Position numbers and translations under genes: made by a program
Assembly (NCBI GenBank): GCA_000708835.1
Contig: DF237189.1
Span: 1-64,000 of the forward strand
DNA from: Klebsormidium nitens
Taxonomy: Eukaryota > Plantae > Klebsormidiophyceae
DNA: 64,000 nucleotides
Direction: 5' to 3'
Shown here: piece after piece, positions 8,696 through 37,100 of the stretch
Numbering within the stretch: the first letter of the stretch is position 1
Layout of the letters: each line of letters starts with the position of its first letter
Notes under the pieces: generated by a model
What the model was told of the DNA's origin: nothing
Database searches by the model: none
Seen by the model: the letters and a program-made list of their open reading frames with translations, nothing else

Positions 8696-8964
8696 CTGGT
8701 CTGCATGCACAGCAATCCCTTTGAAGGAGGTGATGGGGAAGGAAAGCGCTCAATAAGAAAACGCCCAGCGCAAATAGAAGCGCGGCAGAGTTGGACGCCA
8801 TTGGCAGAGGGCTGGCACAGCCAAGCCGGCAGACATGCCACCTCCAGGTGGCAGTGGTATAGAAATCCTTCTGGCAATTGCACGTACGACAGACGTTCGA
8901 TGTGGATCACGGATTCTTATATATGTCACACATGGTGTATCGAAATCGAAATCGAATTATAATA

Positions 8965-9207
8965 AGAGTATTGGCCCTAATTCCGGAATTTCGCAGTTCC
9001 GGACGGGTAAAGCAAAAACCTTATTCCGGACATAACAGATTAGGTCGGTAAGTTGACACACGGTGTCCGGGATAGCGTTCGAAAAATCCGGAATTGGAAC
9101 TGGTGAAAGCCCCAGCGTGCTCGGTAGACTGCTTTGTTAGGTCCGGAATAAGGTTTTTGCTTTACCCGTCCGGAATTGCGAAATTCCGGAATTAGGGCCG
9201 ATACTCT
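8965..9207. mobile_element. MITE, 243 bp, 67-bp TIRs, TA target-site duplication (Tc1/mariner-type flanks)
   Basis: 8965-9031 is the reverse complement of 9141-9207 at 65/67 nt (AGAGTATTGGCCCTAATTCCGG...). TA lies on both sides (8963-8964, 9208-9209). Confidence 0.85.
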
Positions 9208-12986: not shown

Positions 12987-15900
12987 ATGGCCATGCATAA
13001 GAAGGCTCACTTCATCACAGCGACCCATTGTCTGCAGGTTGGACAGGAGCTCAAGTGGCAGCGGCAGGTTGGTCGCCGGCGGATTTTCATCCAGACTGAG
13101 TTTGGCGATGTGCTGGGCCTTGAGGTGGACCGCGCAGAGAAGGCTGGCTCACTCAAGAAGAAGCTCCAGACTGCATTCAACATTCCCACCGAGCATAGCG
13201 AGCTCGTGTGCGGGGACCTGGTGCTCGAGAAAGAACTTACGGAAGTCAGGCGGGATGCCCCTGTCCTGCTCACCAGGGGGGGGTTGTCTCGCTCTCAGAG
13301 CAGCCCCTGCTTGACCCCCCCGTCGGCTCGATCGTTCCTGAAGCAGGACCAGGGAAAAGTGATTGAGGTCGTGGGGGGCGGGAGCTGTGCTGGAAAGCTG
13401 AAGAAAGTGCTGAGGGAGGCGGTGAAAGCGATCGACGGCGGCGTCATTCCGGTGCGCACGACGGGGGGCCTCGGGGGGGCGTATCTGCTGCAGAATACAA
13501 GGGGGGATTGCCTGGCGATTCTGAAACCGGGGGATGAGGAACCGTTGGCCCCCAACAACCCCAACGGTTTTGTGGGGCGGTCTCTGGGGCAGCCTGGCTT
13601 GAAGAAAGCAATTCGAGTGGGGGAGGCTGCCGTCCGAGAAGTTGCGGCATATCTTCTAGATCATGGGGGCTTTGCAAATGTCCCTGAGACCGTGCTGGTC
13701 AAGTGCACGCACTCGTGCTTCCATCTAAACAGCCCGCGCTCCCTCGGGCCTGGAAAAGGCTCTTTGCCGGTGACGAAGCTGGGGTCGTTTCAGGAGTACA
13801 AGGAGCACGACTTTGACTGCAGCGAGCACGGCACGTCGCGCTTTCCGGCGTCCGAGGTGCACAGGATCGGGATCCTGGACGTACGGCTGCTTAACCTGGA
13901 CCGCCATTCAGGAAACATTTTGGTGCGAAAGCTGGGGAGGAAGGAACTAGAGGCAAGGCGTTCGGAAATGGGGAGAGAGGCGACCGTGGATGCGGGCGTG
14001 GAGCTGATTCCCATTGACCATGGGTACTGCCTACCCGAGATGCTGGAGGCGGCCTACTTTGAGTGGCTACACTGGCCGCAGGTGAGCTTGGTGGTTTCTT
14101 CCCTCTTCTGCTTTTGCATCTCTGTTTCATGATCCCGTATGCTGTTGGGCAGGCTTCTGAGTCCCTTCACTTGCATGCTTCCACTGCTGTTCCTGCTACT
14201 ATGCTTAGGCGGTGATCCCGTGCTGATGCTAGGCTTATTCTATTCACTTTGTATTCCTCCCCGTAAGAGCATCTGGAGAACATGCAGAGTGCCTAATAAC
14301 AGAGTTTAGAGGTTAGATCAGCATATACATATTGAAGCCGTGCTTGTGTTCGAAGCAGGCATCGTTGTTCTCTCCGAGCAGCATGTGGCCACAATCCCCA
14401 ACATCTACCACGAAGATGAAGCGGAATCAATGTTCAGAGAAGACAACCAGCACTGACCATTGTGTCCTATGTGCAGGCGTCGCTGCCCTTCTCGGAGGAG
14501 CACCTTGCGTACATTGCTGCGCTGGACCCGGCCCGCGACGTGGAGCTGCTGCGGCGGGAGCTGCCGATGCTGCGCGAGGCGTGCCTGCGCATCCTGCACC
14601 TCTCCACGCTCTTCCTCAAGCGCGCCGCAGCCATGGGCCTCACGCTTGCTGAGATTGGTGCCATGATGAGCCGCGAGTGCGCGGGGCTGGAGGAAGAAGC
14701 GAGCGATTTTGAGGTAGGCAGCAACTGATTGGTGCATCCCAACCAAGCCTAAGGGGTGGTTGGTGTCTGGACGTGCTAGCATTGTCTCGAAGATGAGGTT
14801 CGTTCGTATCTAGAGTAGGTCTCTTGGGACATGTGCGGAAAGTGCAAAACAGCTGTAGTAGCCAAGAGTGTCGTTCATAGAACTGTTGCTTGTTGGATAC
14901 ATTTTCTCATTGGATGATCTGTGTAAGAGGGTGTGATTGAATGGAGAAGAGCAGTAGGATTCAATGTTGGATGTCGTGAAGGCATCGCTTGTACTTTGGC
15001 GGTTTTGGCTGTGGGGGAGAGGCAAGAAAAGCATATTCGAGAAGGGAAGCAGGCCGTTACAGCTTCGAAGAGGCCATCGCGAGCCCCTTTCTTAGGTTCA
15101 TTTCTGTCTGTCGTGCAGCTGGTGTGCCAAGCGGCCAAGCAGCGCCTGGAGGAGGACCTCGCCGCGTTTCGCCCCGAAGACCTCGCCTCCGACCACTTCT
15201 CCTCGGAGGGCCTCGACGACTTCCGCGACGAGGAGCTGTCCAGCGTCCAGTTCGACATGGACGAGGACGACACGTGGCACTCCTCCCTCTCCCCCCGCTC
15301 CGTCTCTGGGGGCCAGCTGTCACCCCTTGCGTCTTCCCGGGGGACGTTTTCGTACTCTCCCGCGTCCCCCTCCGCCGGTGACAGCCGCGCCTCGAGCACT
15401 TCGCCGTTCAGCGGGGGCTTTGCAAACACGACGCCCCCGCCGGGAAGGAACGCGCAGTCGCCCCCCCAGAGGAGCTCCGGGCTGACCACCCCGGCATCGC
15501 GGAAAGTCGGTTTCAACGCCCCCCTGTTGCGCCTGGAAGAGATGGAGCCGCTGAGGGAGGCGTCTCCGCCTGTATCGTCGAGCGTGTGCCACAGTGCCAT
15601 GGGGCTGGGGAGCTCGATCTTCAACCGAAAGGGGGGGCATCCGTTCGGTCGTAGCACCAGCTCGAGGAACCCCCACGGGCTGAAGTCGACGGCGGTGCGA
15701 CGTGAGACGGTGCTCAACATTCAGGGCGGGGCGATCTCGTCTCCGTACGCAGCACACGAAGTTGGTGAGTCGCGGCGTCCCTGCCCTCGTATGGTGTAAA
15801 ACGTGCACGTGCTTCCGGTGTTTGCGATCTCAGTTTAACCTGAGCCGATGTCGACTTTGGTGCCAGCTTCTATGGGAGGTTCTGGTCCGGGGACAGACAG

Positions 15901-16261
15901 CAAGGGTCGCAGTCTTCATGAGCTTTCAGTTGGTGAAGATGTAAAACTGCCTATCTCAATAACCAGCTCGACTACGTTTGCTTCGCGAGACAATTTAGCA
16001 GCTCAGTTGCACCACATCAGCCTTCTAAAGTGCTGCTTATATGCATGCTTTTGAAATCAAACTCTTAAGCGCGTTTGCCTTCCTGTGCGTGCAGTGGACC
16101 AGCCAGGGGCGGAGGGGCCCTTGATCCTCTCCAACATCCCGTCGCGGGCATGGCCGACCTTCCTGCATTACTTTTGTGAGCTGATTGACGATAGTCTGGC
16201 TCAGCGCCGCCGCGAGAGCAACTTGCGGATGGCGCGCCTAGGAACCTCCTGCAAGTTCTGA
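12987..16261 (+). CDS. PI4KG: Type II phosphatidylinositol 4-kinase gamma (PI4Kgamma5/6/7-like) with N-terminal ubiquitin-like domain
   Basis: Exons 12987-14081, 14477-14713, 15119-15764, (possible 15867-15932), 16095-16261. Motifs: RRIFIQTEFG (UBL), GGLGGAY, KPGDEEPLAPNNPNGF, VREVAAYLLDH, LDVRLLNLDRHSGN, PIDHGYCLPE, WLHWPQAS, and the family C-terminus RLGTSCKF*. Confidence 0.93.
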
Positions 16262-17019
16262 TGTAACAGTATGGCATCCAGTTTGTTGTCGGGTCAAAAA
16301 GGACGGGCATGTAGCTTGGAACGCCTGCAGGAAGTCTCCCGAAATGCACGGCGTGCATTAGTTTCTTCTCATTGTATTTCTAACTGATATTGATTGGGTT
16401 CGTCGTGAACGTGGGCAAGAAGTAGGGAGTCGTTTGCAGCGCAGAAGGAGTTGAGTCGAAGTTGTAATAACGTACAGATCATGTAGGTCGAGGGATAGAT
16501 TAGCTGAGTCTACATTTTGGGTCTCGAGAACGTGACTAAGAGTTCCCGCAATGTATAAGCTGACTCACTAGCTGTCCATATTGAGGTATTTGGCATTGGC
16601 CGTCGTTATCTTCCTTTTGCCACACTTAGCAACGTAATTGTTGGTTTAGGCATTATCAGTGCATGCATTGGCACTAATGTGCCATGATCTGCTCAGTGAA
16701 TATATCACAAGTATTGCAGCCCGCCGCGGCAGCGGGGCACATTTTTGGAACTCAGTGACCATTGATATCATGAGTAAGTAACCGTCTCTCGGACTATCCT
16801 GGTTTATAATATATCCGAGAGCTAGCTCTGATCAGCAGGCTGGTTGCGCACCGCGTGCCATCACGTCACTAGGATTCAGGTTAGTAATAGGCGTTATAGT
16901 GACACGGACATACATCAATTACCGTCTAGTCAATATATCCTGTACGTCGAAAAAGTGCCCGCGTCTCAGCACGTACTGGCACATAAAAGACGATGCACAT
17001 GCATGCTGAGCAATCATTG

Positions 17020-17255
17020 CACGGGACACGTACGGTGCGGAATTCGATAGCTGCATTTCAGTCGGTCGGCGCGGCAGGTTACCGAGTACGGACCTAGGCT
17101 CCCAACCCTTGACCGTCGGTCGGACCGGGGCAACTTCCCCGGATCCGACCTACCAGCTATCCGGAACTTTCTGGCGAAAATATCTGGTTTGCCGGAAATA
17201 TGTCAAAATTGCCCCAATTCGCCAGTGGAAATGGTGGAACTTTAGTGCACCATTG
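17020..17255 (+). repeat. Left decayed long inverted repeat of the 16-kb segment
   Basis: Blocks CACGGGACACGTACGGTGCGGAATTCGA, GTCGGACCGGGGCAACTTCCCCGGAT and AAATATGTCAAAATTGCCCCAATTCGCCAGTGG match the reverse complement of 32965-33289. Internal hairpin at 17119-17149. Confidence 0.7.
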
Positions 17256-17929
17256 TGCTGCCTTGGAGAGGGGCATCAAGCCGCTCTTTTTCATAGATGG
17301 TGGACAAAGTCCTTCCTGTCTGCTGAGAAGAATCAAGATCACCTCTTCGGATCTAAAACATAGGCTTTGTGGGTAAGAAATGAGTCGAGTGCTGACGGCT
17401 CAGTGGACGCCATTGTTAAGGCGACTCTTCCAGCTCCTTCGGACACAGGCCCTGTTTTTGACAGGATGTCGAATTCGGGCCCCGCTATTTCGGCCGAGCA
17501 TCAAATCGCAAGGCCTCGGCCAATTTGACCAACCGGGTCGTAAAGGAGATGGGGGAGGTGGACTTGGTGTCGAGCTCCCCTCAATCTAGAGTCTTAAAAC
17601 TCGAGTCTGCTGCAGTCTTCCCTACCTTCAATTTCAAATACCGCCGCTTCATAACACATAGATCCATAATGCACATGTGAGCCCCTGGCAGTCGAGAACC
17701 AGCTGCATTGATTCTCCTTCAGGGTTCTTTCTGCTGTGCTTCTGCAGCTTTGAGTTTTGCTACTAAAGTTCCGAGCGACCAGCATTCTTGCCACATCCCA
17801 TATCATTGCCAAATAGTGCTATGTGTGCATCCGATTGCAGTTTGATTGATGGTGCACCGGTTGGAGCTGCTAAATCTGATGCTCTAAAGCATAGAGTCTG
17901 CCATTAGGGGCACTTAAGAGCAAGCTCTC

Positions 17930-20320
17930 AGAAAGTGCGTTGTCTTTAGACTACCAGGGAAGGCTAAGGACTGAAGGGGGGCCCGCAAGCTATCAGGTTG
18001 ATTGCAAGTTCTGCTGTGCTTCATGTGCTTTTGAATATCTCCAAGACAGAGCAGGAGGTGAGTTGCTTTTGAAACAGGCAAGGGTCACCCTCATTCAGTC
18101 CACTTTCGCATTCATCCTAACCTTCGATCTCATATACTAGAGCAGATTCTAGGGCTCTTCCTCAACCTGCTCAAGAGATCTTGAAGCTTGAAGCATCTCT
18201 CCTGTCGGTATGAGAGCTGAAGCCAACATTAGACCATAGGAGTCTATTTCTTTCTAGTGAAGCTGCAGGGACTGGACGGAGTTGGGCAGTGCTTTTGGCC
18301 TGAGCCTTGTTCACCCTGGATCCTTGTCTGTCATTCAGCTCTCAATGCTTCTTCATACCAAGATTTGAACTGTGGCTGATTGCAATGAATCTGCTCAAGA
18401 CTCAACAGAGGGCAACTGAAACTAGGATCGGATTAGACTTTAGTTTCTGATGTGCATCTGGGTATGTGCTTGGCAGTCTCAGCCCTTTTCATCAATGCTA
18501 GATGTCTAGATATGAACCAGCTTAATGAGGTGGAAATTGGGTAATATGAGCTGACCTGAAAGCATCATTATTGTGCAGAACTTCAAGATTTGGAGGTCAC
18601 CGTTACATTAGCTGCCGGATTGGGGGCAGTCTAGCTCAACTCTGAGTCTTTGTTCCTGGCGGCCTATCAATCTGCGCGAAGGTGGGTTTGACAAGACTTC
18701 GCGTGTTACGCCCACTCTACCTTCAAAAAAGGACAGCACGCATAATGTCTGCGAGTCAATTCTCTTGCACAAGCTGGTGGGACAACTTTGGAACATCTCG
18801 GAAGGTCCTTGAGCTGGCTCCCTCAACCTGAGCCCTTTCTTGTGAAAGGGATCCCCGAATACACCTTCAGTTACAGCCTTTCCTTCTCAAGGGCTCTACA
18901 GCAAGAATCTGAACATGAGTACCTGGTACATCGTCTCCTGCGGCCTTGTGCACCCGGTATAGGGCTATGAGGCTAGGGCGATCCACCCTTTACATACGTG
19001 TGCAGTTAGCAGGAGCCCCTGACGCACTATCTATCTGCTTATTATGTTTGTTCTCCTTTGACAGCCGCAAACAAAAGAGCTGGCAGCTGCAATCTGGTAA
19101 AAGAGATTGCAGGGGGTGCAAGTAGAGCAAGCGTCGCTGCGGTCAGCAAAGCAAGCACGGCTGCGTCCAGGTCGGTGATCCACCCACAGTGATTTCTTAA
19201 TGTGCTCAAGCTGCTTCTTCCAGCAGCTTGGGCGTCGCTAAGATCGTTGACAATTACCTTTGCGAGCACGTATGCATACGAGCCCACCTGATCCGCTTGA
19301 CATACTGAAGAAACTGATTTGTCCATGAAGGTGATTGCTTCAGTATGTCTGCCAACCTTTCCAAGCTCACGGCTCTTAGGTTCAGCTGTACAAACATTTG
19401 GCTACCAGCTGAGCAAGCTTCTGGCCTTGTGTGGTAGGCTTACCGATTCTGCATCAGATCAAGCACATCAATCCGGTACAGCAACCCATGCGCACATAGG
19501 GATTGCGTCTTCCAGGGCTCACGACTTTCAAACCTTCCTGTCCAGATCCCCTTCTTTGCTGACATCATCAACGCTGCGGGCAACGTGGTCAACACTGGTA
19601 TTGTCGTGCGGCCTGAGGTGCGCACCTCTCCGCAGTGGCGTCTTCCTGGCAGAGTGAGAGGCAGCTTGCAAAAGTCATTCCCAGAAGAGGTGCTCAAAGG
19701 GGAAATTAGCATTGATGTGTGGACCGGAGTGCCTGTCTCTTCAACAAGTGCTTTCCCGGCTAAATGCATTCAGCAAGCAATCAGCACTGGCGCAAACACA
19801 TGTTGGCATTTGCTTGAGAAGTGACGGAGCTTATGATCTAATTGCATACAGGGCCCCTCGCTTCCGAAGCCCCTCGCTTTCAAATCTGCGGCAGCCACCA
19901 AGTCAGTCAGCGTCCGGTCAGTTAACAATCTTTTGCTTGTGTGCTCTTGCTCAAAAGCCAAGGCTTTCATGTTAGTGTCTCGTTGTCCCCCTTTCTATTC
20001 TTTAGAATATTGCGGCGTGCCTGCTTTTCAACTCTGCAAGTCTGCAACTTCGTCCAAAGCTTTGCTTGAGTTTGTCAAAGGGATGATTCTGTACCTTGCT
20101 CTCACCTTCTTACGGCTATCTCAACAGGATCTGTGGGTGGTGTTCAAGACAAGCTGTGTATAGCATTCCAGTTACATTATCTTTTGTTGACGGGCTGACG
20201 CTCAAAGTGATCAATGATGTCACAGCATTTCTGCTCTTTGCGAATCCAGTAGGGAATCCAACCAGGAGCCTGCATTTCCCACCATCTTCCAAAATTGCGT
20301 TCTGTGCGGCGTGTCCTTGA
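17930..20320 (+). other. Possible upstream exons (or decayed exons) of the + orphan transcription unit
   Basis: Strong donors (GTGAGT at 18059, GTATGC, GTATGA) bound short open frames such as DCKFCCASCAFEYL and IPFFADIINAAGNVVNTGIVVRPEV. No unbroken phase-consistent model could be built. Confidence 0.25.
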
Positions 20321-20864
20321 AGCAAGGCAGAATATCGAAAGTTTTGAGGTTTGTGTCACTGATAATCGTTTGTTCTTTTGCATCTGAACTTCAGGTCAAA
20401 GGTCTGGTGCCCCTTATCCGGGCGCGACAACTGAGGCCTTGCACGTCTTGAGATTGGAGGTGTCGCTTGCATATTTGGTGCTACCTACAGCGGGGTAAGC
20501 CATGCTTCAGTTCAATTCAATTCACTTCATTGTGACGAAAATAAGGTCCATCTTGCTGGCCGCTAAAGCCTAGGTTTGGTTTCAGGCTGTCTAGGCTGTC
20601 AAAAGGTGACAACTCTCGCAAGGACTCCGCATCAGTCGGATCAAAAGAATGGACAAGCAAGCTCAAAAAGACTCCGTTTTCAGTCAAGGTCATTCCCCGG
20701 GGGTCATTCTCGAGTCGTTGCTCTAGTGCTGAATACTCTCCGTATGCTTGAGCTGTTTGCGCTCATCTTCTAGTGGGCTGGACGCCCCTCAGTCACTTGT
20801 CATGATGACTTGAAGTAAAGGTCCTTACATTTTCCAACTCCCAGACTGTGCGCGCGCATTCTGG

Positions 20865-23800
20865 ATGGCTGGGACTACTTCGTCGAGCTCGCTGGTTGAT
20901 GGCCACGTGGCCTTTCACGGATTTTGGAAAGTGAACCCATATGCGGAGCCACGGCCTGGACACTTCGATGCCCCGGGATACTTTTTGTTCCCCCATCTTG
21001 ACCCCGCCCAATTTCGATTGGATGATGTGTGGGTGGCTGTGTTATGCGACAATTTTGTTGCGCGACCGCGTGGCCATCCTAACCAGACCGAGAGAAGGTT
21101 TGACCTTGCTTGGGCAGCTTATCTGATTGATATGCACCATAACTTATCGGGAGGGGCCGGTCATGTTTACAACAGCGAGAAGTCGTTGGGTGTGGCGTTG
21201 ATGCGCGCTTTTGAGAAGAGGAACGAGGGTCCGACTGGGGGTCGAGTGGGCAGATTCGGCATTTAGCTGGGACAGCAGTTTCGGGGCGGGAGTGCCCCCT
21301 ATGGTCTCATCCTGGTCCTGAACGATGCACTTTTATGTTTTGTGATGGAGGGTCGTCTCCTACGGCTGAAGATGACGGGCTGGCTTGGATTGATGAGGAT
21401 GCTTCGACTGAGGCTGTAGAGCCTGTCGCTGAGGATGGGGATCTTGGGACGTCTTTTGGGCTGGACGGGATTAATGATTTTGAGATACTGGATGATGAGA
21501 CCGCAGAGATTCTGAGGGATGCCGAACCGAACTCCGGCGAGGCATCCGATGATGCTAACAAGCGGTTGTGCGAAGCCTACAGGCGGCTTTACACAAAGCA
21601 TGGCCAGCGTATGGCCTTGAAAAATCTGAGGAATACAATGATGCCCCTCTCAAGGCTAATTGCTTGGATAGCTTGCAAGAGCTTGTCCCAATATACCACG
21701 ATGAGGACTATCGTCCAGTTTGCTGCTCGGAAGCCCTTTTCATATACGGATTGTGCAAGTGGGGAGTGGCGGGAGGTGGAGACATTCTTGTGCGCTCGGC
21801 TTATTGTTGCTGTTTACTCGGACGCCTCGCCCGATATCTTTAAGTGGTCCAAGTTGAAGTTCCTCGAGGACCCTGACAATCAGGAGTTGGTCGACCAGAC
21901 CGTAAGGGATTGGAAGGAGGCGGTATTTGACCACTTCGCTTTTCACGAGCTCGCACCACCTGTGCATATTGCCCTCATCTCGGATACTCGCCATTGTCGA
22001 GGAAACAATTTCCTCCTCGTTTTCCGGGCCGTTGATCACGCCGTTTCCGCCAGGTCTGACTCTTTGGAGATTGGCGACTGCCTTCTGCGTATCACTGCAG
22101 TTGTCAATCGGAGGATGAGACTGAGGCTTGGTGGGGGCCTAGTCATGCCTGATCTCTTGTCGACTGCTGCTCAAGCGTCTCTTGCTGCGAAAGACGAGAC
22201 CGCCGACCTGTTTGACTACCTTATAGACAACGTGTCCCCCTACGAATATTTATGTGAAGGGGGGATCAGGGTGATGCAAGAGAAGGCTGTGCGGGTTTTG
22301 CATTGTGATCCTGCACTAACGGCGGACATGGTCGCCCAATACTTCGTGGAGACTGCAGGCGTTCGTCCCGCTCGAGTGCTGCGGGACTCGAAGTTCAAGC
22401 AAACGCAGCCTGGCTTCGTCACCTGGATTGCTGACTTTGCTCAGTCAGGGGCTGACTGCGAGGATCAGTTTCGAGACATTGATGAGGTTATGCGTCAAAA
22501 TAACGGGACCTTTTTGCACCCAACTTTGGGCGAACACGCAATCCGATTACAACTCTTGAGGAAGCGAACACCAGGTTAGTTGAATTTTGCATAACACAGA
22601 TTGTCTTCGGAGTTGGACGGACGGCTTCTTTGACTGGTCTTTGCCTCATTTACCTTGTGGTCTGCCTTTGGTTTTATCTAGTGTCGGAACAGCTGCCTCC
22701 TTATGTGCGGCATAAGCTAAGAGTTTCAATGTCTGCTTTGTTGAGATCTTTGCTCAGGTACAGATTGTGATGCGCGATTGATCCGGTTCACGGTGCTTGG
22801 CACTGGGTTCCTTTTCTGCCCGCTGTCTCCCTCTCGGTTCCCTCTGCTCTGATGTCTTTTGTTGTTCTCTAGGGCTCAGTATCCTTTCTCGTTCTTGAGC
22901 TCTTCATCTCGGCGACTTTTGAAACCAGAAAGAATTTATATCGATAAAATAGTGAAGGTTGAATAGCTCCGCAGGCAAGGTTCTTAACGCTCGTTGACCC
23001 TTCTCAGGTGGCCGAGCTTCCAAACCGTGGAAGATGTTGGAGCGCATCCAGGAGACAGCGGCGAATCGCCGTAACCTCCTGGAGTTGCACCCGGCCAGGC
23101 CAGCGCACGCGTCTATTTTAGAGTTCTGGGATGGCTTTGCCGCGCTGAAGAATAGTATGACCAATTTTCGATATACAATACTTTCCGCCGACTTGTACAA
23201 AGCTGCTAAATCGACGGCGGGACGAGGTTTTGACGTGCGCTCAAGCGAGGGGCAAGCGCCCCGTGCTCCTGTGTGCTTGACTCCTGCCGATCGGGAGGAA
23301 TTGCACACATATTTTCCTCACCATCCGCCCTTCCCCTCTCACGTCCCTCTGGCACAGATGCGGCATCTTCATCAGGAATATTGCGCGCTGGTGGGCTTCG
23401 AACATAACGGCCAGCGTATCCTCGCCCCTATTACCAGTTCTACAGGGGATATCAAGGCCAATAACCACCTTCTCAGCCAAGATAACCGGTGCCCTTGCTG
23501 CCAAATGCCATACGCTGACTACTACCATCATTTCTATTGCGGCGCCCACCGCTCTGCGTTTACTAACATGGAGGACTAACGGGGTTTCTTGGAGGAACTT
23601 GCCGATCTGATCGCCTTCGCTGGGACCAGCGACGCCGTGTGCAAATCTCTAAATGAGGTGCACGGCCAGGAGCTCTTTGATAGGGTTCTTGTGCTTGCTG
23701 CTGCGCAGCTTACAGCTGCAAAGGCGCTCGAGGAAGGTGGAGGGCTGCCAAGCCCCATTCTCATTCGAAGAGCGACGCTCTTTGCTGCATTCTCAGCTGC

Positions 23801-26800
23801 GCCGGACACTGTCGCTCTAGGGAAAATATTGGAGGGTAAGCTCGGCGACAGCAATTTGAGGTACAGGGCCGGCCGCGGCGAGTCGTTTGACGAGGTGATG
23901 GCGGTGGGAGTAAACCCTCTGGCCAAATCGCGCCTTAAGACCCTGATGGTATTTCTAAAACGGCGACACCATGACGTGTTGGGACTACCAATTGATTATC
24001 TTTATCCTCGGAATCCTCTTGTCCCCGTCCCCAGGATAATATGCGCTCCGATGCACACTGTGATGAGGACGCTCAAGATTCATCTCAGCCTCATCCAGAG
24101 CGTTGGCATTGGGACAGCGCCTGACGGGCCAGGCGCGAAGGAGTCTCTTGATATATATGCAATGAACCAGGTTGGTGACTCTCCGCTTTGCTCTTGGATT
24201 TAGTTGTATCCCGTTTCTTTATCCTCTTCTTAGTTTCTCCAGGCTTCGCGTGTGACTGTAAGCGGATTGTGTCCCCTTTCGGTCAAGGTTCTTTTTGAGA
24301 TATACTCTGAGTTCTGATCCGTTTGCCTTCCTTCCTTTGTAGAAGGCCCTAATCAACAGCCACTTACTCATGAAGGACGAGTCGAATCCTGGAGACCGTA
24401 TCTCCATGGACTTGAACGGCGAATCTATTCGACTCGTCTTTAATCGGTGGCCTGATTTGGTTGGAGAGTTTTTGAGCCGGGTTCAAGCACTCCTTCCCAT
24501 ATTGGCGACCTGGACGACGAAGCTTATCTACAGCCACGAGCTCCCTACGGCTCGCTCTCGCTTGGCGTTATGGTGTCTCACATATGCCGAAATTACCGTG
24601 GCTCGAATCATGGACGACCAGCTTCGGGCAACGCAGACCAAAGACCGCAAGAACGTGGTCGTCTGCAATCATGCCCATGTGAAAGTTGCACACCTTCCAC
24701 AGGTCCGACCTCGAACAAATCTCGCTTTGACGTTTGGTCCTTTCTGGCACTTGCAAGTACAAAATCAACAGGCCTCACTCAATACTTCGGCGCCTGTGTC
24801 ACTTCGGATTTGGATTACATAGACTGTGACCTGAGCATTGGGTAGACTCGAGTGGCCGTTCATTCGGACCGACTGTCCCGACCCCTGATGTTCTCCGGGC
24901 CGTGCGCGTGCGACAACTTCAACTGTAAACGGTGATTTTGTGTCCGTTTTCCTTGGGCGATTAATGACACCTGTTCTCCGTTGTTTTACAGCTTCACGAA
25001 GCCTTCGATGTACCTCTAATTGACCTATCGGAAGAGGCTGGTGAACGGCTTCAAAAGCCGAATAAGGAGAGTATGTACAATAGGAGTGACCGGAAAACTG
25101 ACCAGGTTGACACAATGATCAGGGAGGAATTCTACCGGGAGAAGGGGATGATTGAGTACGGGATGAGGATAACGGATCCCCACACAGGCCAGCCCAAGCA
25201 TCATAATGCCTTTCAGGAAACAGTGGAAACTAATGTAATATATTATGGCTGCTTCTACAATTTTGATCAACCTGCGCGCTTCAATTTTGTCTCTCTTTTG
25301 GGCAACCTGGCTATGGGTCCCAGCGACTTGTTGGCTGATCAAGCTTACATATATTTGAGAGATCAAAGTCCGATTGAGTCCACGGAGTCTCCGGTGGCGC
25401 AGATGAACCTCCTCCAGCTTCCTCCCAAGAAGCCTTGCAAATGCACTTGCTTATGCCAGTGCGTACAGGGGTGCGCAAAGGCATGGCCTTGCAGATGCAA
25501 GTGTCGGGATGATTGCCGTGACTGTGCACACGGCAAGGCAACGGCTGACTGTAGCTGCTTATCATACCCACTTGTGGTCCTCCTAACGGGAAAAGGCGCA
25601 GGTAATTTAGTCTGCCACTAAGATCCTTGGACCCAGTGTTCAAATCTGAACCCTCGTTGGTGTGTCTGTTTTGGAAGGCTTTTGATTAAAGTTCACCGCG
25701 CTGTTTCGGACTGTTGATGTTGATTGTATGTATTGTGCTTGCAGGTACTGATCAATATCTGCATGTCCGCTTTTGCGAGAGCGGCGACCAAACAACCTGC
25801 AGCGCGCATATACCCGCCCTGGTTAGTTATTTGCGGGGCTCGAATGCTCTCCCCAGCCCTGGCAGGCTTATTCCCGCCAAGGACTATATCCTCGGCCAGC
25901 TAGCGACCCTCTGTAACGCTGCCGCGCGCCGGTTCAGACAACGCAACCTTGTGAAGCTTGGGTTGGAAGCACGGGCTCGGTTGGCTGAAAGTAAGTATTC
26001 CCGTCCGCACAAAGCTGGTCCAACGGATTGGTTCCGCTCGTTGGTTGCTGTTCTCGGCGAACTGCTAATCTCGTTGACCATCCTTTTGATTCTGCTGACT
26101 ACCAGTTTCCGTCTATCGAAGGCGGACCCCGCCCTTGGGCCGCCCAGTTTCCTCATCCAGTTTCTTTGGGGGCAGGACGATCCGGTCCCTTGGATCCTGG
26201 ATCCGTTTCTCTGGCGGATGACCGGAATCACCATTCAATCACTGCCTAAATCGTTCTATGACTTAGCTTCCGCTTTTCCGACGACTTTGTGTTACCTGAG
26301 TAACAAAATCCTTCTAATCTTAACTCATTTCGTCCGCTTGACTTTGGTTCCGCTCGCCAACAGCTGATTCTGCTCAGATTCCGTTCTTTCGCCATTCCGC
26401 TGAGTGCCGTTCTGTCGCTGGCCGCCGATTCTTATTAACTTGGGGCAGACTGAGATTCGTCCCGTCAGGCTTCCGTCCGCTGCTGGAATACCTTCTTCTG
26501 ACTTCGTATACCGTCCATTGACAACAGATCCCGCTGCACTGTGTTCTGCGCTGGGCTGGTGGGCTTTGTCCACGCACCAGAGTCTTCGATCCGTTTTGCT
26601 TGACAAACCGGTCGACAGACTCGAGGTAGACATTAATAGCTTTCTGGCTTCTTGATGAGCTTGGCTCTGGTCCGCAATGTACGCAAAGGCGATTTCGCGA
26701 AGACATTCAAACACTTTGGGTCTCGTCTCAGGGGTTACTTTCGACTTCAACGAGCCAATCACAGGGCCTCCGCATGGTGGCACTCTGGTCACCATTCGGG

Positions 26801-29606
26801 GTAGGGGTTTTGGAACTCTGTGCACAGCCGAAGGCGGCCGCATTAGTGTGCGGGTCGGGGATACTCTAGCCACGGACGTGACCATCCTTGACGACACCAG
26901 TATAACTATTGTCACTCTGCCTGGCACCGGGGGTGATCGGCCGGTGGTTATTATTCCCCCGGTCTTCGTCCGATTGCATCCGGGGGATGAAGCAGGTCAC
27001 TTGCTGGCCGGGCAAAGGATTGAGCTAGCAACGCGCTTTTCTTTTGGAGGTAAGACGGTTGCGGCGGAGTTTGACATCAACCGGGACTTCTTGACTCGAT
27101 GTTTCAGGTGGCCGTACCTGGCTCTGTTTTGAATGCTCGCAAACCTTTGTTGGGCTGAGTATGATTGAAACGTCTTTTCAAATGGTCCCTTTCGTCTTCA
27201 AGTTCATATTTCCCTCTATTGAACCCGGCCACGGCAACAAAGACGAATTCCTAAGAATCAAACGGATGAACGCTTCTCACGTGTCAAGAGGAGAGAATCT
27301 GGACAAGCACTTTGTTGTGGCACTTTATTGGAAGCTCGTTCGGCCTTCTTAACCGTGCAATACCTCCCGATTTGCAGGTCCCACTGTCCACCCTCTCCCT
27401 CCAGATGTCCGCATCCCCACTGAAGGTGGCCCCCTTTGCGTCACCGGCACCAATCTGGACGATCCGGACTGCCTCATCTCGGCCGTTGTGCACGACCGCA
27501 GGGGCGCCATTGTGGCGGATCCGGAGCCCATCGACGTCCAAGTAGCTGTTGCGACAATCGGCGGAATAAGGCTCCATATAGGGCCTGGTCCAGGCTCTCT
27601 GCGAAAGCTAGAGTTGCGAAATAAACATGGGACGACTTACTTCCGCATGTCCTACCAAGGTACTGGTTCTATCACAAATTCTGGCCAAGGAGTCGACGAT
27701 TGAAATGCGTCGTCTCTGACAGTGGCTAAAGTCGCTTTTGTCTACTTCGGTGCTTGAACTGCCTGCTGACGAGGATGAAGGGGGAATGAAGTTGGTTACT
27801 TGAGCCAAAGCCAGTCCGATATCAGTCCGTTGACCAGTCCGACTGGAATCACTTGTCGTAATTCTGCATTCATGCTATGTTCAGGCCCCGAAGTCACAGC
27901 CGTCGAGGAGGGCCGCGAATTGGGGACGGTGGGTGGTGCCAGATTGACCCTAGAAGGGCGCAACTTTGGTCGGCATGGGGACATTGAGCACGTCACTATC
28001 GGTGAGCAGCCATGCTGCGCCCGGTTGAGAGCTTTCTTAATAGTTTTGCTGCCCAAACAGTCGGTGTCAAGTGTCGTTTTGACACGGCGTGTTGATTCCT
28101 TGTTTGTCATCAACGTCCTTCCTTTATTCTCCCTCACATGTTGGTTAGCCGAGAGCTCGATCGGAAACAGTGTTAAATACAGTAGTTTGAAGTAGGCAAT
28201 CTACTTCCTTTTTTCACCTGACTCATTATCATGAGCACTTTTGCTTATCCGCTCCAGGGACGGATCGATGCCGGTTCAATCTGCTCGAAGACCACCGCAA
28301 GCTGCAAGTGACCGTCCCCTCGAGCTCTGGAGGACGGATGCCTATCCAAGTCACAGTTCGTGGGGCCCGTTCGCCTGTTCGAGACAATATCTTTGTCCAA
28401 TATGCTGCTCCAGTGGTCATATCCTGTACACCTTCTGCAAAGCCGGGTGACGTCATAAGTGTGACGGGTCGTCACCTCGGATCAACTATTGATCAGAACT
28501 GTCAGGTCACCATAGGCGGCATCCTCTGCGATTATGCTCGCGTCACCCTGGCTCACGTGAAACTTGACTGTAGGGTACCGGAAGGCGAGGGCAGGAATCA
28601 TTCTGTCCTAGTATGCATTTCTGGGCAGTGGTCCGCTCCCTCCACGGCCGTCTTCGCATATAAAGGTGAGCTCTGAAGCAGTCTCGATCCTCCCTCCCTG
28701 CACAACCCAGACATTGATTGACTTGCCGTACTGAGCCACATGACCGAGTCGGACTCAAAGCTCGTCCTTCTCAGCCAGCAGTGCCGAAGCCAACAGAGAT
28801 TCAAGTCTTATCGGATCCAGCACTACACTGATCAGTCTGTCGAGACGTTTGTTCGCGACTCCTTATCACGATTTATCTTGAAAAGTCAATAGGCTTGCAA
28901 GTGTGGGCAGATTTGGTAAGACTCCTACTTCTGTTCAAGCGTGTCTGTTATATTTTTGTAGAGAAGCCGAAGCAAGGCTCGGCGAAGAGGCCCCAACTGG
29001 GTGCGGAGCTGCCGGTGGTGTTTTCCGAGGCGGAGATTACAGGGGCTTGTCGGGTGAACGTGCAGTACCGGCTTATGAGATACTATGCGGATTACAAGGA
29101 CGAAAGGGCTCGTATGGGTAAGCTAGCCTCCGCTTGATGACAAAAGATGGGAAAGTGCATCCGCAACGATTGGAACGTGTGAAGGGTTTACGTATCGGAT
29201 CCATGGGTCACAAGCGAGCCCATTGTGTTGGACCGTATGTATAACTTCATCAGTACAAGAAGGCATGCTTTGTCACCGGGATTGCAGCAATTGATGTGGA
29301 CCCGTGCAGCGAGGCTGAGGCACGAGGTAATTGGCACTTCATTCTGCTTCACTTCTACATTGCAACTCATATATTCTGACCTTAATTGCAGACGCGTTTG
29401 GACAGCCTTTTGACAAGCGAAGCCAAGTGAAAGCTCAAGAGAATCATGACAAGGTATTAGATCGCCTCGTCAAAGTGGAGAAGCCCGCTAGAAGTGATAT
29501 ATGGGCGAGCATGAGGCACGCGTGGGAGCAAGAGAAAGCTCGCCGGGGGCTACTTCAACGAGATAAAGAGGCCCCGAGTTCGTCAAAACGGCAGCGTAAG
29601 GAGTAG
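20865..29606 (+). CDS. Large multi-exon orphan gene: RRM-like segment, CCHC knuckle, Cys-rich cluster, 4 x IPT/TIG, basic C-terminus (~1800 aa if all joined)
   Basis: Long ORFs 20865-21266, 21335-22579, 23034-23579 and 23589-24203. Phase-consistent GT-AG chain: ..22574 > 23008.., ..24170 > 24343-24702 > 24992-25601 > 25745-25990 > 26732-27049 > 27378-27659 > 27885-28001 > 28258-28665 > 28962-29117 > 29392-29606. The 5' end and the treatment of the TAA at 23577-23579 are unresolved. Confidence 0.6.
26732..28665 (+). CDS. Four tandem IPT/TIG (Ig-like) domains within the orphan gene
   Basis: Repeats of the IPT pattern P..(T)xGG..(V/L)T(I/L)xGx(N/G)FG...VTIG..C...V(P/T)xGxG...V.V....S....F.Y: EPITGPPHGGTLVTIRGRGFG, RIPTEGGPLCVTGTNL, LGTVGGARLTLEGRNFG and SAKPGDVISVTGRHLG..VTIGGILC..CRVPEGEGRNHSVLVCISGQWS. 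Confidence 0.8.
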
Positions 29607-30159
29607 ATCAAAATGAGATCATTCATAGTAACATCGTCAAAGCAAGCGCTCGCGAATATATAGATCTGTGTGGTCGGATTTTTGAGCAGGCTTTGAAATA
29701 GGATGCACGCGCGCGCCGCTGCAGCAATCATCAGGAATCAGTCCGATCGCGGATCGAGTCAACAGGAAACAGTTTGAGTCAAACAGGCAAACTTATTGAT
29801 TGTTGGCGCCGCAGCGTAAATGTATTGTTCACGTGACATTGATAGATGGCCTAGACATTGACTGGAGAACTCTTAAGGCTAAGTTAAATTAGCACGGCAT
29901 GCCGTGCGAGTTATACAAAAGTCCACTGTAGTGACTTGTGTTCTTAGGGTGAACAATACGACCCGGTCCAAATACTTTCAAGTGTTACCTTCTCAAGTGG
30001 ACATTGCATAGCAACGCCAAGCGAATGGAGGTTATGTACCGGTCTGACAACCTACATGACCCAACTGTATCGATTCTATGTACTGGCATGGAACATTGAT
30101 TCTGAGACTCCGCCTAACTTTTCATAGATACAGATTGTGCTTTTTCTAACCTAGCCTGA

Positions 30160-32879
30160 TCACCTCAGGTGGAGCCTCAGTTTGCGGGCCATGCTTCTTA
30201 ATACATAGACAACATTCCCGTTGTCCAGTACCTTCTTACAGAACACATCCGAGTCGACGTCGTGTGCGAGCGGGATGTCTTTGGTCCAGTCGGTGCTGAG
30301 GGCAAAAAGCGCCGGGCTCAACTCCGAGTACTTCCTCTTCAGGGCGACCTCCTGTCCCCTGCAGAGACAAGCGTTGCAGATTTAGAATCTTAAGAATAAC
30401 GATATTCCCGTGACTCAAAGCAAAGAAACTTGTAGGCCAGAAAGAGTACTAGACTCGGCAATTGCTGAGGCACACTCGTTGCAGGAGGTGCGTGGGTGAG
30501 ACCGAGAGGCCATTGAAGAGGCCTCACCTCATATGAGCGGAAATGAAGCAGGTTTCAGTATTGTCAGATATCAGCAGGATTTGTTTCCAAGTGGAATGCT
30601 TGACCTCTGCCAAAGTCAGAGGGCCCAGACAGCTTTGATTTCCAGCAACGCTTAGCAGCTTCAGAGTAAGTATCATTTTGAATGAGGCAGCTCAAAGCAG
30701 CATCTATTCTGACAGGTACCCTCATGCAAGCAGAATAGGTTGGCCCATCCAAAGTTTCCTAAGCTCTGGCACATTGCATCTCCAGATCTATAATCCACCG
30801 GAATCATTCAGCACTCCAAAGCTCTGATTGACAACCAGATTGTGCTAATCACACATTGCCTCACCCAAGCTGGAGAGCGGTGTCGCACGCATAGTCGGGC
30901 CGGGTGCCGGAGATGTGCAAGTCAACTTTCCCATGGCGGCCAGGTGGGTTCTTGATCAGAGTAGCCACTACGTCGTCGCCAGGGGTGTCGCCGCCCAGTT
31001 GGATGATGTGCACTTCAAACAAGGTACTTGTGTCATAGCAGAGGACCAGCGGGAACTCTGCGCCAGCAGAGGAGCCTCCACCGGAGTCACCAAGGGCGGG
31101 GCGCTGCAGAAACAAACAGCTCACATGGGTTCGAATACAGGAGAGGGCTCAGGAAAGGTGCATATATTTCTAACATACCCAAGTAAGAAGCCTCTTATGG
31201 CAGAATGCATTTCAATGATGTCCTGGGCACTCGAAAGAACACCTTCTTGTCCTAACAAAACCGCGACAAACCACTTTGGCTTCACTTGATACAAACAGCA
31301 CATTATAGTCTGAAGCTATTCTCATAACTTTGACTCACAGCCTGAAAGTTCAGAGATCCGTTGACTTGTGCTGTCAACATGACATGTGCTGCGCAGTATG
31401 CGATGCCCCACCTTCAGACACAGGAGCTACTTAGATCAGACCCCAGTGTTAGATGATGTGACTTCAATGCTAACCTTGGCTGGTGAGACCTTCTGGTACA
31501 TGCTCTTGAACGACCACTTGAACACCCGCAGGTCCTTGTACTCGAGCGCCTTGAAGAGGGCACGTGTATCCTCATTCCAGTAGCTGTCAGTGAGCTGCAG
31601 CTTTGCGAAGTTGAAGACGCGATCCTCTCCCCTGCCCTCGACAAAGTTTGGGTTGATGATGAGGCCATAGTCAAAAAAATCCTTCCTGTCCTTCCCGAAC
31701 TGAGGTGTCGAGGACCGCCCTTAAGCACTCCCCGCTTTCTTCTTGCTAGCAGCAGGAAGCGGTGTAAGGTTGACCTCAGCAGAATCAGCCTCCACAGTAT
31801 GACCAGGCATCACAAAGCCTTGTGGTGCCCCTTTGCGTGCCCGTTTTTCTGTCAAAAATAAAACCCAGAATCACTTTCCCAGGCCAAGGAAATGCACCAA
31901 GATTGCACCTTATCTGATCAAACAAAGTATTGGTCAGCTCCAAACGCAGAATCTCCAATGTCAGCCTATAAATTGCAGAAACATTTCCACCTGCGTGAGG
32001 GCTTGGCCTTTGATGCAACTTTGGAGCTGGTGTTAGGAAAGGAAAGGCTAATCACTTCTTTTAGCGTGACACGCCTCAGAAGGCCAAGGCGATCCAACCC
32101 TTCAGGATTCATTCGAGGTGATAATGTACTCAGAAGCTGCTGGAAGTATTGCATGACCAGTGGACATGTAGGGGAAGGGAGTATGACAGATGATTCAAAG
32201 CCCTCAACGTTGGTCAAACGCTTAGTCTCACATGTAACAAGATTTTGGACAGGAAGAGACAATCAGTAACAGGCATCATGTTTAGCATGATCCAGAGGAA
32301 GCTCCGCATACCTCGCTGAGATTGCACCTTGGCGAGCGCCACAGCTCTGCGGCGTTCCCCAACAGCTGCAGCAATGTTTCTGCCTCCAGTTCCGCCAGCA
32401 GTAGGGCCCCACAGGACGTCGTAAACGTCTTCTCCAAGAAAAAGCCGCGGTGTGTTCCGGAACATATTCATCTCAATGCCTTCCAAGTGTGGGTCCCCGA
32501 GGCTCTGTGCTGGAGGAAGAGCAAGTGCGAAGACATCCGACTTTACAAAGTGCTTGAAGGTAGTCAAGCACCAGCTTTTGAACTCCACACGAGACTTCGG
32601 TGCGCTGCTGATTGTGACGAATACTGAAGGCTGTACTTTGCTTTCCTTCTTGGGAGACGTGCCATCGCTTGCAAGGGGTCCGCTGTCATCATCTTCCAGT
32701 TGCGACCCCAAGTGACTGTGTGACTGAGTATTGCTCAAATTGCTGAAGCCAGGTGGGCTAGTACTGGCAGGATGCGCTGCGTAGACACGCGACACAGATG
32801 GTCTCGTTGGAGGAGCGTGAACAGTTGACCCTTGCGCATTGGCCGTTTGAAAACCCATGGCAGGACCCATGGCCGCCAT
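30160..32879 (-). CDS. Multi-exon orphan gene, function unknown
   Basis: ATG at 32879. Exon 32879-32328 ends at AAG/GT. Further protein-like exons: ~31710-31480 (FGKDRKDFFDYGLIINPNF..YKDLRVFKWSFKSMYQK), ~31105-30867 (FPLVLCYDTSTLFEVHIIQLGG..), ~30710-30605 and ~30358-30160 (GQEVALKRKYSELSPALF..). Some junctions are phase-compatible and others unresolved. Confidence 0.5.
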
Positions 32880-32964
32880 CTTTATCAGTAAGCATGCTTT
32901 GAAACTGTTTATGTATTACTTTCATTCTAGACTGAACATGCTGAATCCAGTGAATCCTGATCCC

Positions 32965-33289
32965 GCCATGTCATTGTGCATTCAAGTTGCCCAGTGCCGT
33001 TTTGGCGCCAATTTGGGTCATATTCAAAATGCATTGACACTACTTTTATACCGGGCACTCGAGTTCAGGTAATTGCCCCAGTTCACGACTTGGGCAAACA
33101 TCCAGGAATTTCCCCCGGTCCGACAGAGAAGCACGAAAAGCACGACCCACCCTCGACCTACACAATTGGTGACACCAAGATATGCATCTGCGGGATTCCG
33201 TGCGGTCGGGACCCCAATGAATGCGCGTTAATCTGGGGTCCGACGCCCGGTATTGCCCGTTTCAAAATCCGCACCATACATGTCCCGTG
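32965..33289 (-). repeat. Right decayed long inverted repeat of the 16-kb segment
   Basis: Reverse complement of the blocks in 17020-17255, with ~70 bp of extra sequence between the two outer blocks. Internal hairpin GTCGGGACCCC...GGGGTCCGAC at ~33205-33244. Confidence 0.7.
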
Positions 33290-34125
33290 TGCATGCAAAT
33301 GACGATTACACCGCAACGTGCACACATGTTGATAGCCATGCGCAGGCGTTGCGCACGGGCGGCTGGTCGCTCCGGCCCAACTTATCCGATGCATGAGAAT
33401 CAAAGTTCTCGTGTTATATTTCAGTTCTAACTTCAACTTGGATTCTTTATAGCCTTAATTACATAGCGCGATTCCACGTGTACTATAATCAAGCTTGCCT
33501 TCAGTCGAAAGTGTCTGATCAGACCACGTCGATATTGAGTCCAAAACATGGCAGATCAAACGCGGTGGCTGCGAATATGCGTGTATACATTTTGCGACAG
33601 AGCCTTGGTATAAGCAACCCCGACTGTCTGGTCGAATGCATGCTGTATTTACTGGCGTGCGAAAGGTGGTGTACTGAACTGAACCCTGAGTTCCAACACG
33701 TATCTTCTTGCAGGCCAGACACACCGTCACTAACCAGACTTATGCAAGTACATGCAGTAACGGTCAGCTGCTCGTCTGGAATTGGATTGCATCACTAGCC
33801 TAGCTCATTTTGCTGTCGCCCCGATTCGGAGCCTGGGTGCCCAGCCATGGGCCGCGGTGATGGATAGTCTGTCAGTCCTACTATATTGTCAGCACAGCTT
33901 CCAGTCCAACAAGGAGCACGCTGTTACGTTTGGCAACGCTGGCAATCCTTCATCTTATCACTGTCAACGGGTCGAGTCATTAACCGGCACCCAGATCCCC
34001 GCAGTCGCACACTCAACACCTTGGCCTGAAGCAAAGCCCGATCAATAAACTACCCAAACGTCGCGCTCTCCGCAAGCAGATACAGCAACTAAACGTTTCC
34101 CCGAACCTCTTCCGCGCCCCCGTCT

Positions 34126-37100
34126 CTACCACAGGTTTCCCTTCGATCGCGTCGAGGAGGGCACCAAATTCTTCCAGCTCGGCATCTGAAGCTCCTTCTT
34201 GGTCGGGGCCGGCGGCGGCGCGGCCGCGGCCGTCTTCGGTGAGAATAGGCTCTTCTCGAAGCCTTGTGTGAAGCCGGTCGCGATGATGGTCACGTGCAGC
34301 TCGCCCTCGTACTTAGGGTCGATCACCGCGCCGAAGATGACGTTTGCTTCAGGGTCCGCTAGACTTGTGACCACCTGCGAACGGGACGGAACAGGATTAA
34401 AAGCCGGTTTTGCGAAAGTCGACCCAGGAGAACAGCCCATCGCTGAGCCCTGGAACGCACTTCGCGGACCGTCCGACCGTAGATGTGGACGAGTGATTGT
34501 GCGAGAGGTTCAAGGATAGGAAGCCACAGTATTGTCATCCTCCTGAAAAGGAATGCTCTCTGCTATGACGTGAAGCACAGGGTGACAGAGTCAGCAGTAC
34601 GACTAGCACTCATAAGTGTGAAGACAGAAGGAGTCGCGAAGCTCACTCCAGGGGAAGAGAAAAAGAACGAGGCCAATCGCGGCTTATTCGCTCCCTTCCC
34701 CACACCGTGCTGACGGCGCTTCAGCTACAAATGTCCAAGATTCTTGCACGCTCCAACAGAAGGCAATTATTTGGTAGAGCAGAGCGAATCCCTGCTCCAC
34801 TACTTCAGGAGGTGCAAACCGCTCATGCCTTGCCCTTATGCGCGGCCCGTTTCTTGATTCGATCTTGCAAGGTGACTCACTTTGGACACCTCGTTGACCT
34901 CCTGCAGCGTGAGGTCCGTCCCCCCCGTGATGTTGTACACGATGCCCGTCGCGCGCTCGATGGACCGCTCGATCAGCGGCGCTGACGTGGCGGCCAGCGC
35001 GGCCTCCTCGGCGCGGTTCTTGCCCGTGGAGAAGCCGACGCCCAGCATGGCGCTCCCGCTGTTGCTCATAATCGCCTTCACGTCAGCAAAGTCCACGTTC
35101 ACCAGGCCCGGGATCTGCGGAGGAGTGGATAATCTGATTTCAACAAACTGAAAGGTAGGATATTTCAATTCTGGTGAAAAGTCTACGTGTACCAGGCCGC
35201 AATCTGTGGATGTCTTCGGATCTTACGATTCGAGTTTTGGTAATTCGGGATTCGTGTGTGGCGAAGTTATGGGGCGTGGATTGTTGAGGAGATCACGACC
35301 TTGGACTGTCTGAAGTTCCATGTTGTCAATGAGCTCAAAGGGAAACAGATGTCGGGGCGAACGGAAAGTCGATTCACCAGGCCCAGGACCCACGAGAGGA
35401 CAGGGTTTGGGCTGAGAATTCTAGGATGTGTGGGTTACTGAGGCTCGGTTGGTGCCGTGGCTTACTCTCAAAATGCGCCACTTAATTCACACGAGCTGAA
35501 TTCGATGGAGCGGGGATTGACGAGAAAGTGTGGCAGTACTGAAGCGGCAAAGTGGGTTCTCCTGGGCCGACTCCGTTCACTAAAGCTAACCAATCTTCAA
35601 ATCGTGAGGAAGTGTGCGTCTCCTCAATCGTAAGCTCTGCTTCAACGACACAACGGCCTGAAGCCAGAAATACTAGATGACGTAAAACCGTGCAAAGATG
35701 ACGTCAGCGGCGCGCACCGTGATGATATCCGAGATGCCCTGCACGCCCTGGCGCAGCACGTCGTCCGCGAGCAGGAACGCGTCCTGCAGGGGCGTCGCCT
35801 CTTGCACCACGTCCAGCAGCCGGTCGTTCGGGATCACGATCAGCGTGTCCACGTGCTTCCGCAAGTTCTCGATCGCGTCCAACGCCTGCGAAAGTTGGAA
35901 AAGTGTGCTCGCAACTACTTATGCCGTCACGCACTTGAATAGTGACTCAAGCATTTTAAAGGTAAAAGACTCGCAGACAGAAGTTTGAGAATAACGATCA
36001 GCGTGTCCACGTGCTTCCGCAGATTCTCGATCGCGTCCAACGCCTGCAACATTTGACGGTTGTCTCGGGGTTAGGGTTTGGCCAGTCCACGGTTTGGATG
36101 CGTATATGTACGATCCGCGTGTCCAGGCACTTCGCAAGTGTCAATGGTGTCCACGCCTGCATAGACAGGGAAATGATTCTCTGCAAACGGTTACCGCCGT
36201 TCAGCAGTTTGCGGGATCAACCACCCGCATCAGTGAGATTCCGGAATCACAATCAGCGTGTCCACGTGCTTCCGCAGAATCTCGTCCAACGCCTGCAAAA
36301 CATAGTCATGTTTCAAGTGGTCGATGTTTTGCTAGGCTAGGTTGTTGAATGTCACAAATAGTGTCCACGAGCTTCTGCATGTTCTTGCTCGCGGCAAACG
36401 CCTAGCGACGCAGGAGGTGAATGTTCAAAAATGTCGGACAATGACAGACCGGCAAAAGTTCTGGCAGAAGTTCCACTGCAGTCGCAGTCAGGCTCGCTAC
36501 GCAGACAGAAGGACTCCAACGTTCCGCGGCGATTCAACGTGCTTCTACAGTTGGTGAACTGCGTTCAACGCATGTAGAGACGCCATCTGAGGAATATGAT
36601 CACAAAATGCAACGCCTACGGTTTTGTAAGGTTTCGAGAAGGTCGACGTATGGCCAAGAAAGCAAGTGGACACACTGAGGTTGCGCATTGCCCATGCAAT
36701 CAAATCTTAACGTCAGCACGAACTTCCGTTCTTGTCTTGTCACGCTGCCCTCGATAAGACCAGATGCGCTTGAAAATGATGCACTTCGAATAGGAAAGAG
36801 CGGTGGGGCTGTCTACGTCCTTGGCCGATTGAAGAAGGGGCCGAGTGGCCTCGCATGCAAACCGCAACAGGCAAGCTAAAATTGGTTATCCACATGTCCA
36901 TACGGTTCCAGGTGGTCAATTGGGTCGTCAATTTTTAAAAACATTTCCGATTCACCCCTCGTTTCTTCAAAGCCGACCAAGAGTCATCCACTCGTGAAGC
37001 TATTTAGCTCTCAATTTGTTTCAGCAATCACGTCTGGTAGTCGACATTTCTCGAAAAGAGCAGAAAGCTTTTCGATCTCAAGCAACGACTCTCGCCCCTG

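Follow-up and report, generated by a model that had tools for sequence, protein, structure and literature searches.

The window analyzed here is a stretch of 64,000 nucleotides from Klebsormidium nitens (contig DF237189.1, positions 1 to 64,000, forward strand). An element of 16,270 bp occupies positions 17020–33289, and its insertion point lies between the 3′ ends of two conserved genes, PI4K-gamma and FtsZ; the neighbouring sequences belong to a PI3/PI4-kinase gene and, on the other side, to the 3′ part of FtsZ, in line with the first-pass annotation of this sequence. The element carries two convergent genes, a long gene on the + strand encoding a predicted transposase that continues into four IPT/TIG repeats, and a shorter partner gene on the − strand. 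We propose, with considerable confidence, that the element was once autonomous, a cut-and-paste DNA transposon of 14–16 kb with two genes that belongs to the CMCT clade, and that the present copy has decayed. Its boundaries, the length of its target-site duplication (TSD), its mobility, its gene structure, the co-inheritance of the partner and the constraint on its sequences are established.

The junctions between flank and terminus read TG/CAC at the left end and GTG/TG at the right end. Positions 17020–17047 match the inverted segment 33262–33289 at 24 of 28 positions, and three of the four mismatches are CpG>TpG; alignment thus reproduces the outer inverted block described in the first-pass annotation. 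The local alignment of the two ends scores 51, compared with a mean of 32 (standard deviation 4.2, maximum 47) for 183 random pairs. That annotation had joined several blocks into a long, collinear terminal inverted repeat (TIR). The outer block stands and the long extent does not, as ungapped identity falls from 36/50 to 48/100. The second block, given as 22/26, is found as the subterminal GTCGGACC block at 17116/33127, with 21/26 identities ungapped (BLAST 20/23, E 0.006). It lies 97 bp inward from the left end, compared with 163 bp at the right, and is therefore an asymmetric subterminal repeat. A 25/35 block appears only when gaps are allowed, and a weak inner block of 14/20 is background, since many matches of 14–15/20 occur. 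The end anatomy is therefore that of a short TIR followed by asymmetric subterminal repeats. The terminus pattern CACGGGA..TACGGYGC, which was derived from these ends, is found in the window at the two ends only (expected number 0.01). CpG depletion, with an observed/expected ratio (o/e) of 0.56–0.59, extends across the 5′ region and the partner gene. The features are collected in Table 1.

Table 1. Features of the element and its immediate flanks, in window coordinates.
Feature	Position	Strand	Remarks
Left TSD copy, TG	17018..17019	+	Flank letters; 2-bp duplications in all three complete elements
Left TIR	17020..17069	+	Starts CACGGGA; compared with right end in text
Left subterminal region	17070..17260	+	GTCGG/GGACC/GGGGCAA repeats, offset unlike right end; role putative
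5′ region	17300..20864	+	CpG-depleted (o/e 0.56), no conserved open reading frame; 1.4–3.0 kb in relatives
Predicted transposase, exon 1	20865..22574	+	N-terminal domain, acidic stretch, weakly RRM-like part; reading frame shifted near 21,240 vs. L001/L002
Exon 2	23008..24170	+	Candidate Asp 1 (codon 23130, FxDG), Asp 2 (23448, GDxK), CxxC (23490/23499), His (24054, MH)
Exon 3	24343..24702	+	Helical region, H-x-H-x4-H (codons 24670, 24676, 24691)
Exon 4	24992..25601	+	Candidate catalytic Glu (codons 25031/25034; second invariant, 8/8), Cys-rich block
Exon 5	25745..25990	+	Helical linker, conserved phase-1 donor at end
Exons 6–9 (26732–27049, 27378–27659, 27885–28001, 28258–28665)	26732..28665	+	Four IPT/TIG-type repeats, phase-1 introns between
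Exons 10–11 (28962–29117, 29392–29606)	28962..29606	+	Conserved C-terminal domain, basic tail resembling a nuclear localization signal; stop 29604–29606
Partner gene, four exons (32879–32312, 31848–31475, 31103–30865, 30358–30160)	30160..32879	−	~459 aa
Right subterminal region	33080..33239	−	GTCGGACC/GGGGCAA repeats
Right TIR	33240..33289	−	Right termini present also in L004, L008, L019
Right TSD copy, TG	33290..33291	+

Relatives were sought with the core exon as query in the JGI and Logan assemblies. Seven true homologues were found, on contigs from JGI samples 3300060284/5 and runs SRR14092358-60; P0007 and P0008 were dropped as repeat artefacts. The gene order of the element is repeated in L001–L007, L010 and L019, with unrelated flanks. 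A terminus lies upstream of the predicted transposase gene in L001, L002, L004, L006 and L007, and in L003 with its first base changed; a terminus lies downstream of the partner gene in L004, L008 and L019. Ten of the 11 termini read CACGGGA, the remaining one TACGGGA. Three elements are complete, as follows: the window element, flanked by TG/TG; L004, of 13,963 bp, by AA/AA; and L007/L008, of 16,279 bp, by TT/TT. The flanking dinucleotides match in all three (joint chance ~3.5e-4), and the third flanking base is mismatched in all three. The flanking genes differ from element to element (S18, O-FucT and GCD14, SMP), and none of L001–L007 has a PI4K or FtsZ match. It follows from the termini, the 2-bp flanks and the differing neighbours that the unit is mobile and makes 2-bp duplications. 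The proposal of two inward-reading genes in one large mobile element is thus upheld, since relatives keep both the ends and the genes, and the TSD that had been missed is present as TG. No relatives were found in viral contigs, in prokaryotic genomes or in the scanned metagenome set.

Some relatives carry further repeats and inserted sequences. Gag-like open reading frames (ORFs) occur in L002 (about 15300–16224, by eye) and in L019 (523–1356, with a PEG10_N-capsid Pfam match), and these are nested retroelement insertions. In L002, three spaced copies of a short repeat starting with CACGGG lie at 637–948, just outside the left terminus. L006 has a ~190-bp tandem repeat starting with CACGGGG at 11871–12251, in the large core intron.

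The + gene has 11 exons, extending from 20865 to 29606, and encodes ~1,860 aa. Its spliced reading frame, checked by joining the exons in a script, is continuous into the Cys-rich block and the four IPT/TIG repeats, and each of its 10 introns is GT-AG and keeps the frame in this sequence-based model. Profile and protein searches were run exon by exon. The first-pass annotation had the + unit begin just inside the left repeat; however, 20865 is the position of the first conserved ATG, and no conserved ORF lies in 17300–20860. A short ORF in the 5′ region, 17895–18137 (+), has a sub-threshold Cys_rich_CPXG match (E 0.0024) and is not kept in relatives. For the RRM-like region of exon 1, RRM_1 matches the homologue P0014 (E 0.019), and profile matches to RRM proteins have E values of 0.04–0.4. 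In P0030, the RRM-like part and the core are in a single ORF. Exon 2 contains an in-frame TAA at 23577–23579, where relatives have Trp; the spliced frame after 23579 has no stop.

The candidate catalytic residues are conserved among copies that are ~30–55% identical, as follows. The Asp of FxDG is found in 8/8 copies, the Asp of GDxK in 9/10, the two Cys residues in 10/11 and 11/11, the His of MH in 9/9, the H-x-H pair in 7/7 and the Glu in 8/8. The H-x4-H spacing is kept in the window, L002 and L003. The whole CMCT/RAG1-type pattern is distributed over four exons, with a stop codon within. In relatives from distant subfamilies (L004, L007, L010, L013 and P0030), several core introns of the window are absent, and the insertion between the CxxC and MH motifs is longer than in the window. 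On the order of its motifs and their conservation, we suggest that the + gene encodes a transposase with a CMCT/RAG1-type pattern. Where the first-pass annotation saw no transposase motif, then, a conserved DDE-type pattern is present, and the gene would be a transposase rather than an orphan or cargo gene. The combination of zinc-binding modules and tandem TIG domains that it described is upheld. Language-model features of the H..E region of P0017 in the Atlas lie nearest to RAG1_ZnH2 clusters, at 0.88, and provide a lead only.

Several observations weigh against the proposal. About 84 columns equal the proposed catalytic residues in conservation; the choice of the D-D-E triad was therefore made by motif context. 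In the distant subfamily, Glu replaces the last His of H-x4-H. Pfam and PDB sequence searches with the core exons, the homologues and the alignments were blank, and the Atlas score is below 0.9. AlphaFold models of two single-ORF exon pieces are of low confidence, with predicted local distance difference test (pLDDT) values of 41 and 46; five fold searches with such low-confidence models gave generic helical or weak matches only, which speak neither for nor against an RNase H or RAG1-type fold of the core. The splice model and the fusion of core and tail are drawn from sequence comparison. Finally, a search for an empty site through PI4K returned only short contigs.

The CMCT clade includes EnSpm/CACTA, Mirage, Chapaev, Transib, Plavaka and ESTA, along with Lanisha; in CMCT transposases and in RAG1 the motifs follow one another as D, D, C(2)C, H, H(3-4)H, E, with CA..TG termini and TSDs of 2–5 bp (Kojima, PMC12730594). 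The element is like these in its CA..TG termini, its 2-bp TSD (3/3) and its D-D-CxxC-H-H-x4-H-E order. It differs in its ~1,860-aa predicted transposase, which includes an RRM-like region, a Cys-rich block and four IPT/TIG repeats and is without similarity to the CACTA or RAG1 Pfam models detectable by hidden Markov models. Mirage elements make 2-bp TSDs. Plant CACTA/En-Spm elements encode TnpA and TnpD on the same strand and have CAC ends, subterminal repeats, a 3-bp TSD and a second protein with an accessory role. The element shares with plant CACTA the CAC ends, the subterminal repeats, a second protein and the size range, CACTA reaching ~20 kb (PMC2613891). In contrast, its TSD is 2 bp rather than 3, its genes are convergent and no Transposase_21-type Pfam match is found. 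The dinucleotide TSD recalls Mirage and ESTA, the TSD of ESTA being TA (PMC12730594); however, the dinucleotide here varies (TG, AA, TT), and there is no TET/JBP cargo.

By published description, Lanisha is the closest known system. Moss Lanisha elements are 10–12 kb long, with 35–40 bp TIRs and 5–8 ORFs, have a transposase that is RAG1-type by HHpred (10.1101/2020.07.03.163634; PMC8245031) and carry Mnd1-like and bacterial-like cargo (PMC8245031; 10.1101/2020.07.03.163634). The same preprint reports Lanisha homologues among K. nitens proteins (10.1101/2020.07.03.163634), and Lanisha has been placed within CMCT (PMC12730594). Both are large plant-lineage elements with short TIRs and a predicted RAG1-type transposase. 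It is therefore conceivable, if tentative, that the element belongs to a Klebsormidium branch of the Lanisha superfamily, a reading compatible with ours that would make it a new member with a different gene load. Against this, Lanisha has 5–8 ORFs and Mnd1-like cargo vs. two spliced convergent genes here, although the moss ORF count could reflect separate exons, and the core as query found no match among moss, fern or NCBI-annotated Klebsormidium proteins. Size and TIR length (14–16 kb and 28–50 bp here) are similar to those of Lanisha without lying in its range. A literature search for Klebsormidium with Transib returned nothing relevant.

After the candidate Glu, the predicted transposase continues with the Cys-rich block, a helical exon, the four TIG-type repeats and the C-terminal domain, whose basic tail is also present in L002 and L003. 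Pfam TIG (PF01833) matches two ORFs (E 6e-9 and 2e-10), and the other repeats are recognized by alignment with relatives. Among PDB entries, a TIG repeat is matched best by Plexin-A1 (E 0.0014), a surface-receptor type; this match and the phase-1 introns suggest that the repeats were captured from a surface-protein gene. These observations might also mean that the element is real and the TIG exons are a separate captured gene or passive cargo, and the helical exon of L006 contains a stop ahead of the donor. We consider this unlikely. Five elements (the window, L002, L003, L004 and L007) have a phase-1 donor at the end of the helical exon; the window, L003 and L004 pair it with a phase-1 acceptor in front of the first TIG, and L002 and L003 retain the junctions further on. 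In addition, the open frame beyond the TAA of exon 2 runs on through the tail. The TIG exons are 45–54% identical in amino acids between copies and 31–40% at third codon positions, compared with 52–53% and 36–39% for the catalytic exons; TIG and partner exons together show 43–55% and 31–42%, again core-like. Since the TIG exons are constrained like the core, the tail was under selection during the spread of the family and is not passive cargo. Comparison among copies thus supports the predicted transposase-TIG fusion, and a literature search for a transposase with a TIG domain found no described fusion.

The partner exons are located likewise in L002 and L003, with 32–44% identity, and L019, whose last partner exon matches at E 7e-6, bridges the window and the distant subfamily. 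Exon-wise searches found no known domain in the partner and no Kelch or PHD match; from its sequence, nothing appears to suggest RAG2. A PHLxG-like string raised the possibility of an HUH/Rep protein, which was dropped as the string is not kept in L004, L008 and L019. The tail-to-tail gene layout and CAC termini are also found in ProtoRAG (PMC9435367). More generally, Transib and ProtoRAG (PMC1131882, PMC9435367) resemble the element in CAC termini, asymmetric subterminal parts and similar motif order, ProtoRAG having a convergent second gene. Together with the RAG1_ZnH2 lead, these likenesses would fit a plant ProtoRAG/RAGL element with the partner as RAG2 counterpart. We regard this as very improbable, since the TSD is 2 bp here rather than 5 bp, no RAG1 match is found at the sequence level and the partner is not detectably RAG2-like in exon-wise searches. 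Transibs, some of which have 3-bp TSDs according to a preprint, are 3–4 kb long, vs. 16 kb here.

Mutator elements and their relatives (MULEs) have long TIRs and a TSD of ~9 bp. The first-pass annotation leaned toward a Mutator-like, long-TIR element with orphan cargo, for which the two convergent genes between inverted ends speak. This idea retains hardly any credibility and is refuted by the ends: the TIR is ~28–50 bp and starts with CAC, and the TSD is 2 bp in three elements. The residue order is also unlike the MULE pattern, with no MULE Pfam match. Finally, that the ends are independent small repeats around ordinary, syntenic host genes, as the patchy inner similarity and the failure of the PI4K-based search to recover an empty site might suggest, is a negligible prospect, because the termini enclose this gene pair at unrelated sites, where the 2-bp flanks agree (L004, L007/L008), and both genes carry lesions.

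Under our proposal of a decayed CMCT-clade transposon, the D-D-E triad, with the CxxC/His zinc site, would cut at the CAC ends and insert the element with a 2-bp stagger, as the CMCT pattern implies. For the TIG tail, it is about an even bet that it derives from a host surface-protein gene, taken up through phase-1 exon shuffling, and that it was retained as a scaffold in the nucleus, aiding oligomerization or binding the partner or chromatin; the tail might then serve in assembly or targeting. In CACTA and Harbinger elements, second proteins have accessory roles. By analogy, the partner may be an accessory factor that binds the subterminal repeats or counters silencing or methylation. It is tempting to go further, though this is doubtful, and propose a distinct, undescribed RAG1-type lineage in streptophyte algae that has stably gained IPT/TIG domains and requires a partner of new fold, in effect a separately arisen RAG-like machine of two components, with the Ig tail and the partner governing end recognition, targeting or escape from silencing. 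The copy in the window has a frameshift near 21,240 and the TAA at 23577 in the predicted transposase gene, and an in-frame TAA at 31721–31723 in the partner gene. Thus, this copy is dead and could at most be moved in trans.

The rest of the window contains further repeats. A 517-bp fold-back element at 53201–53717, with inverted arms of 119 nt at 92% and GTA on both sides, resembles a miniature inverted-repeat transposable element. Small inverted-repeat elements at 8962–9210, 9296–10154 and 52626–52951 (arms of 76, 28 and 40 nt) are probably non-autonomous transposons. At 35833–36413, within the FtsZ gene, a 65-nt segment of an FtsZ exon recurs in four degenerate copies, which are local partial exon duplications, and a 58-nt exon-like direct repeat (86%, spacing 131 nt) lies at 46947–47135. 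Two low-complexity ORFs rich in A/G/P/Q, 54841–56610 and 57882–59966 (−), of 589 and 694 aa, have no Pfam match.

For annotation, the locus is a dead transposon rather than two orphan host genes. Large RAG1-type elements have already been published for mosses and Klebsormidium, namely Lanisha. The element described here would extend the clade from which RAG1 arose by a form of 14–16 kb with two genes. Its unusual part is the conserved fusion of a predicted transposase to tandem Ig-like TIG domains, kept under selection across copies that are only ~30–55% identical. The family may be used to test how accessory domains and partner genes contribute to the working of RAG1-type enzymes.

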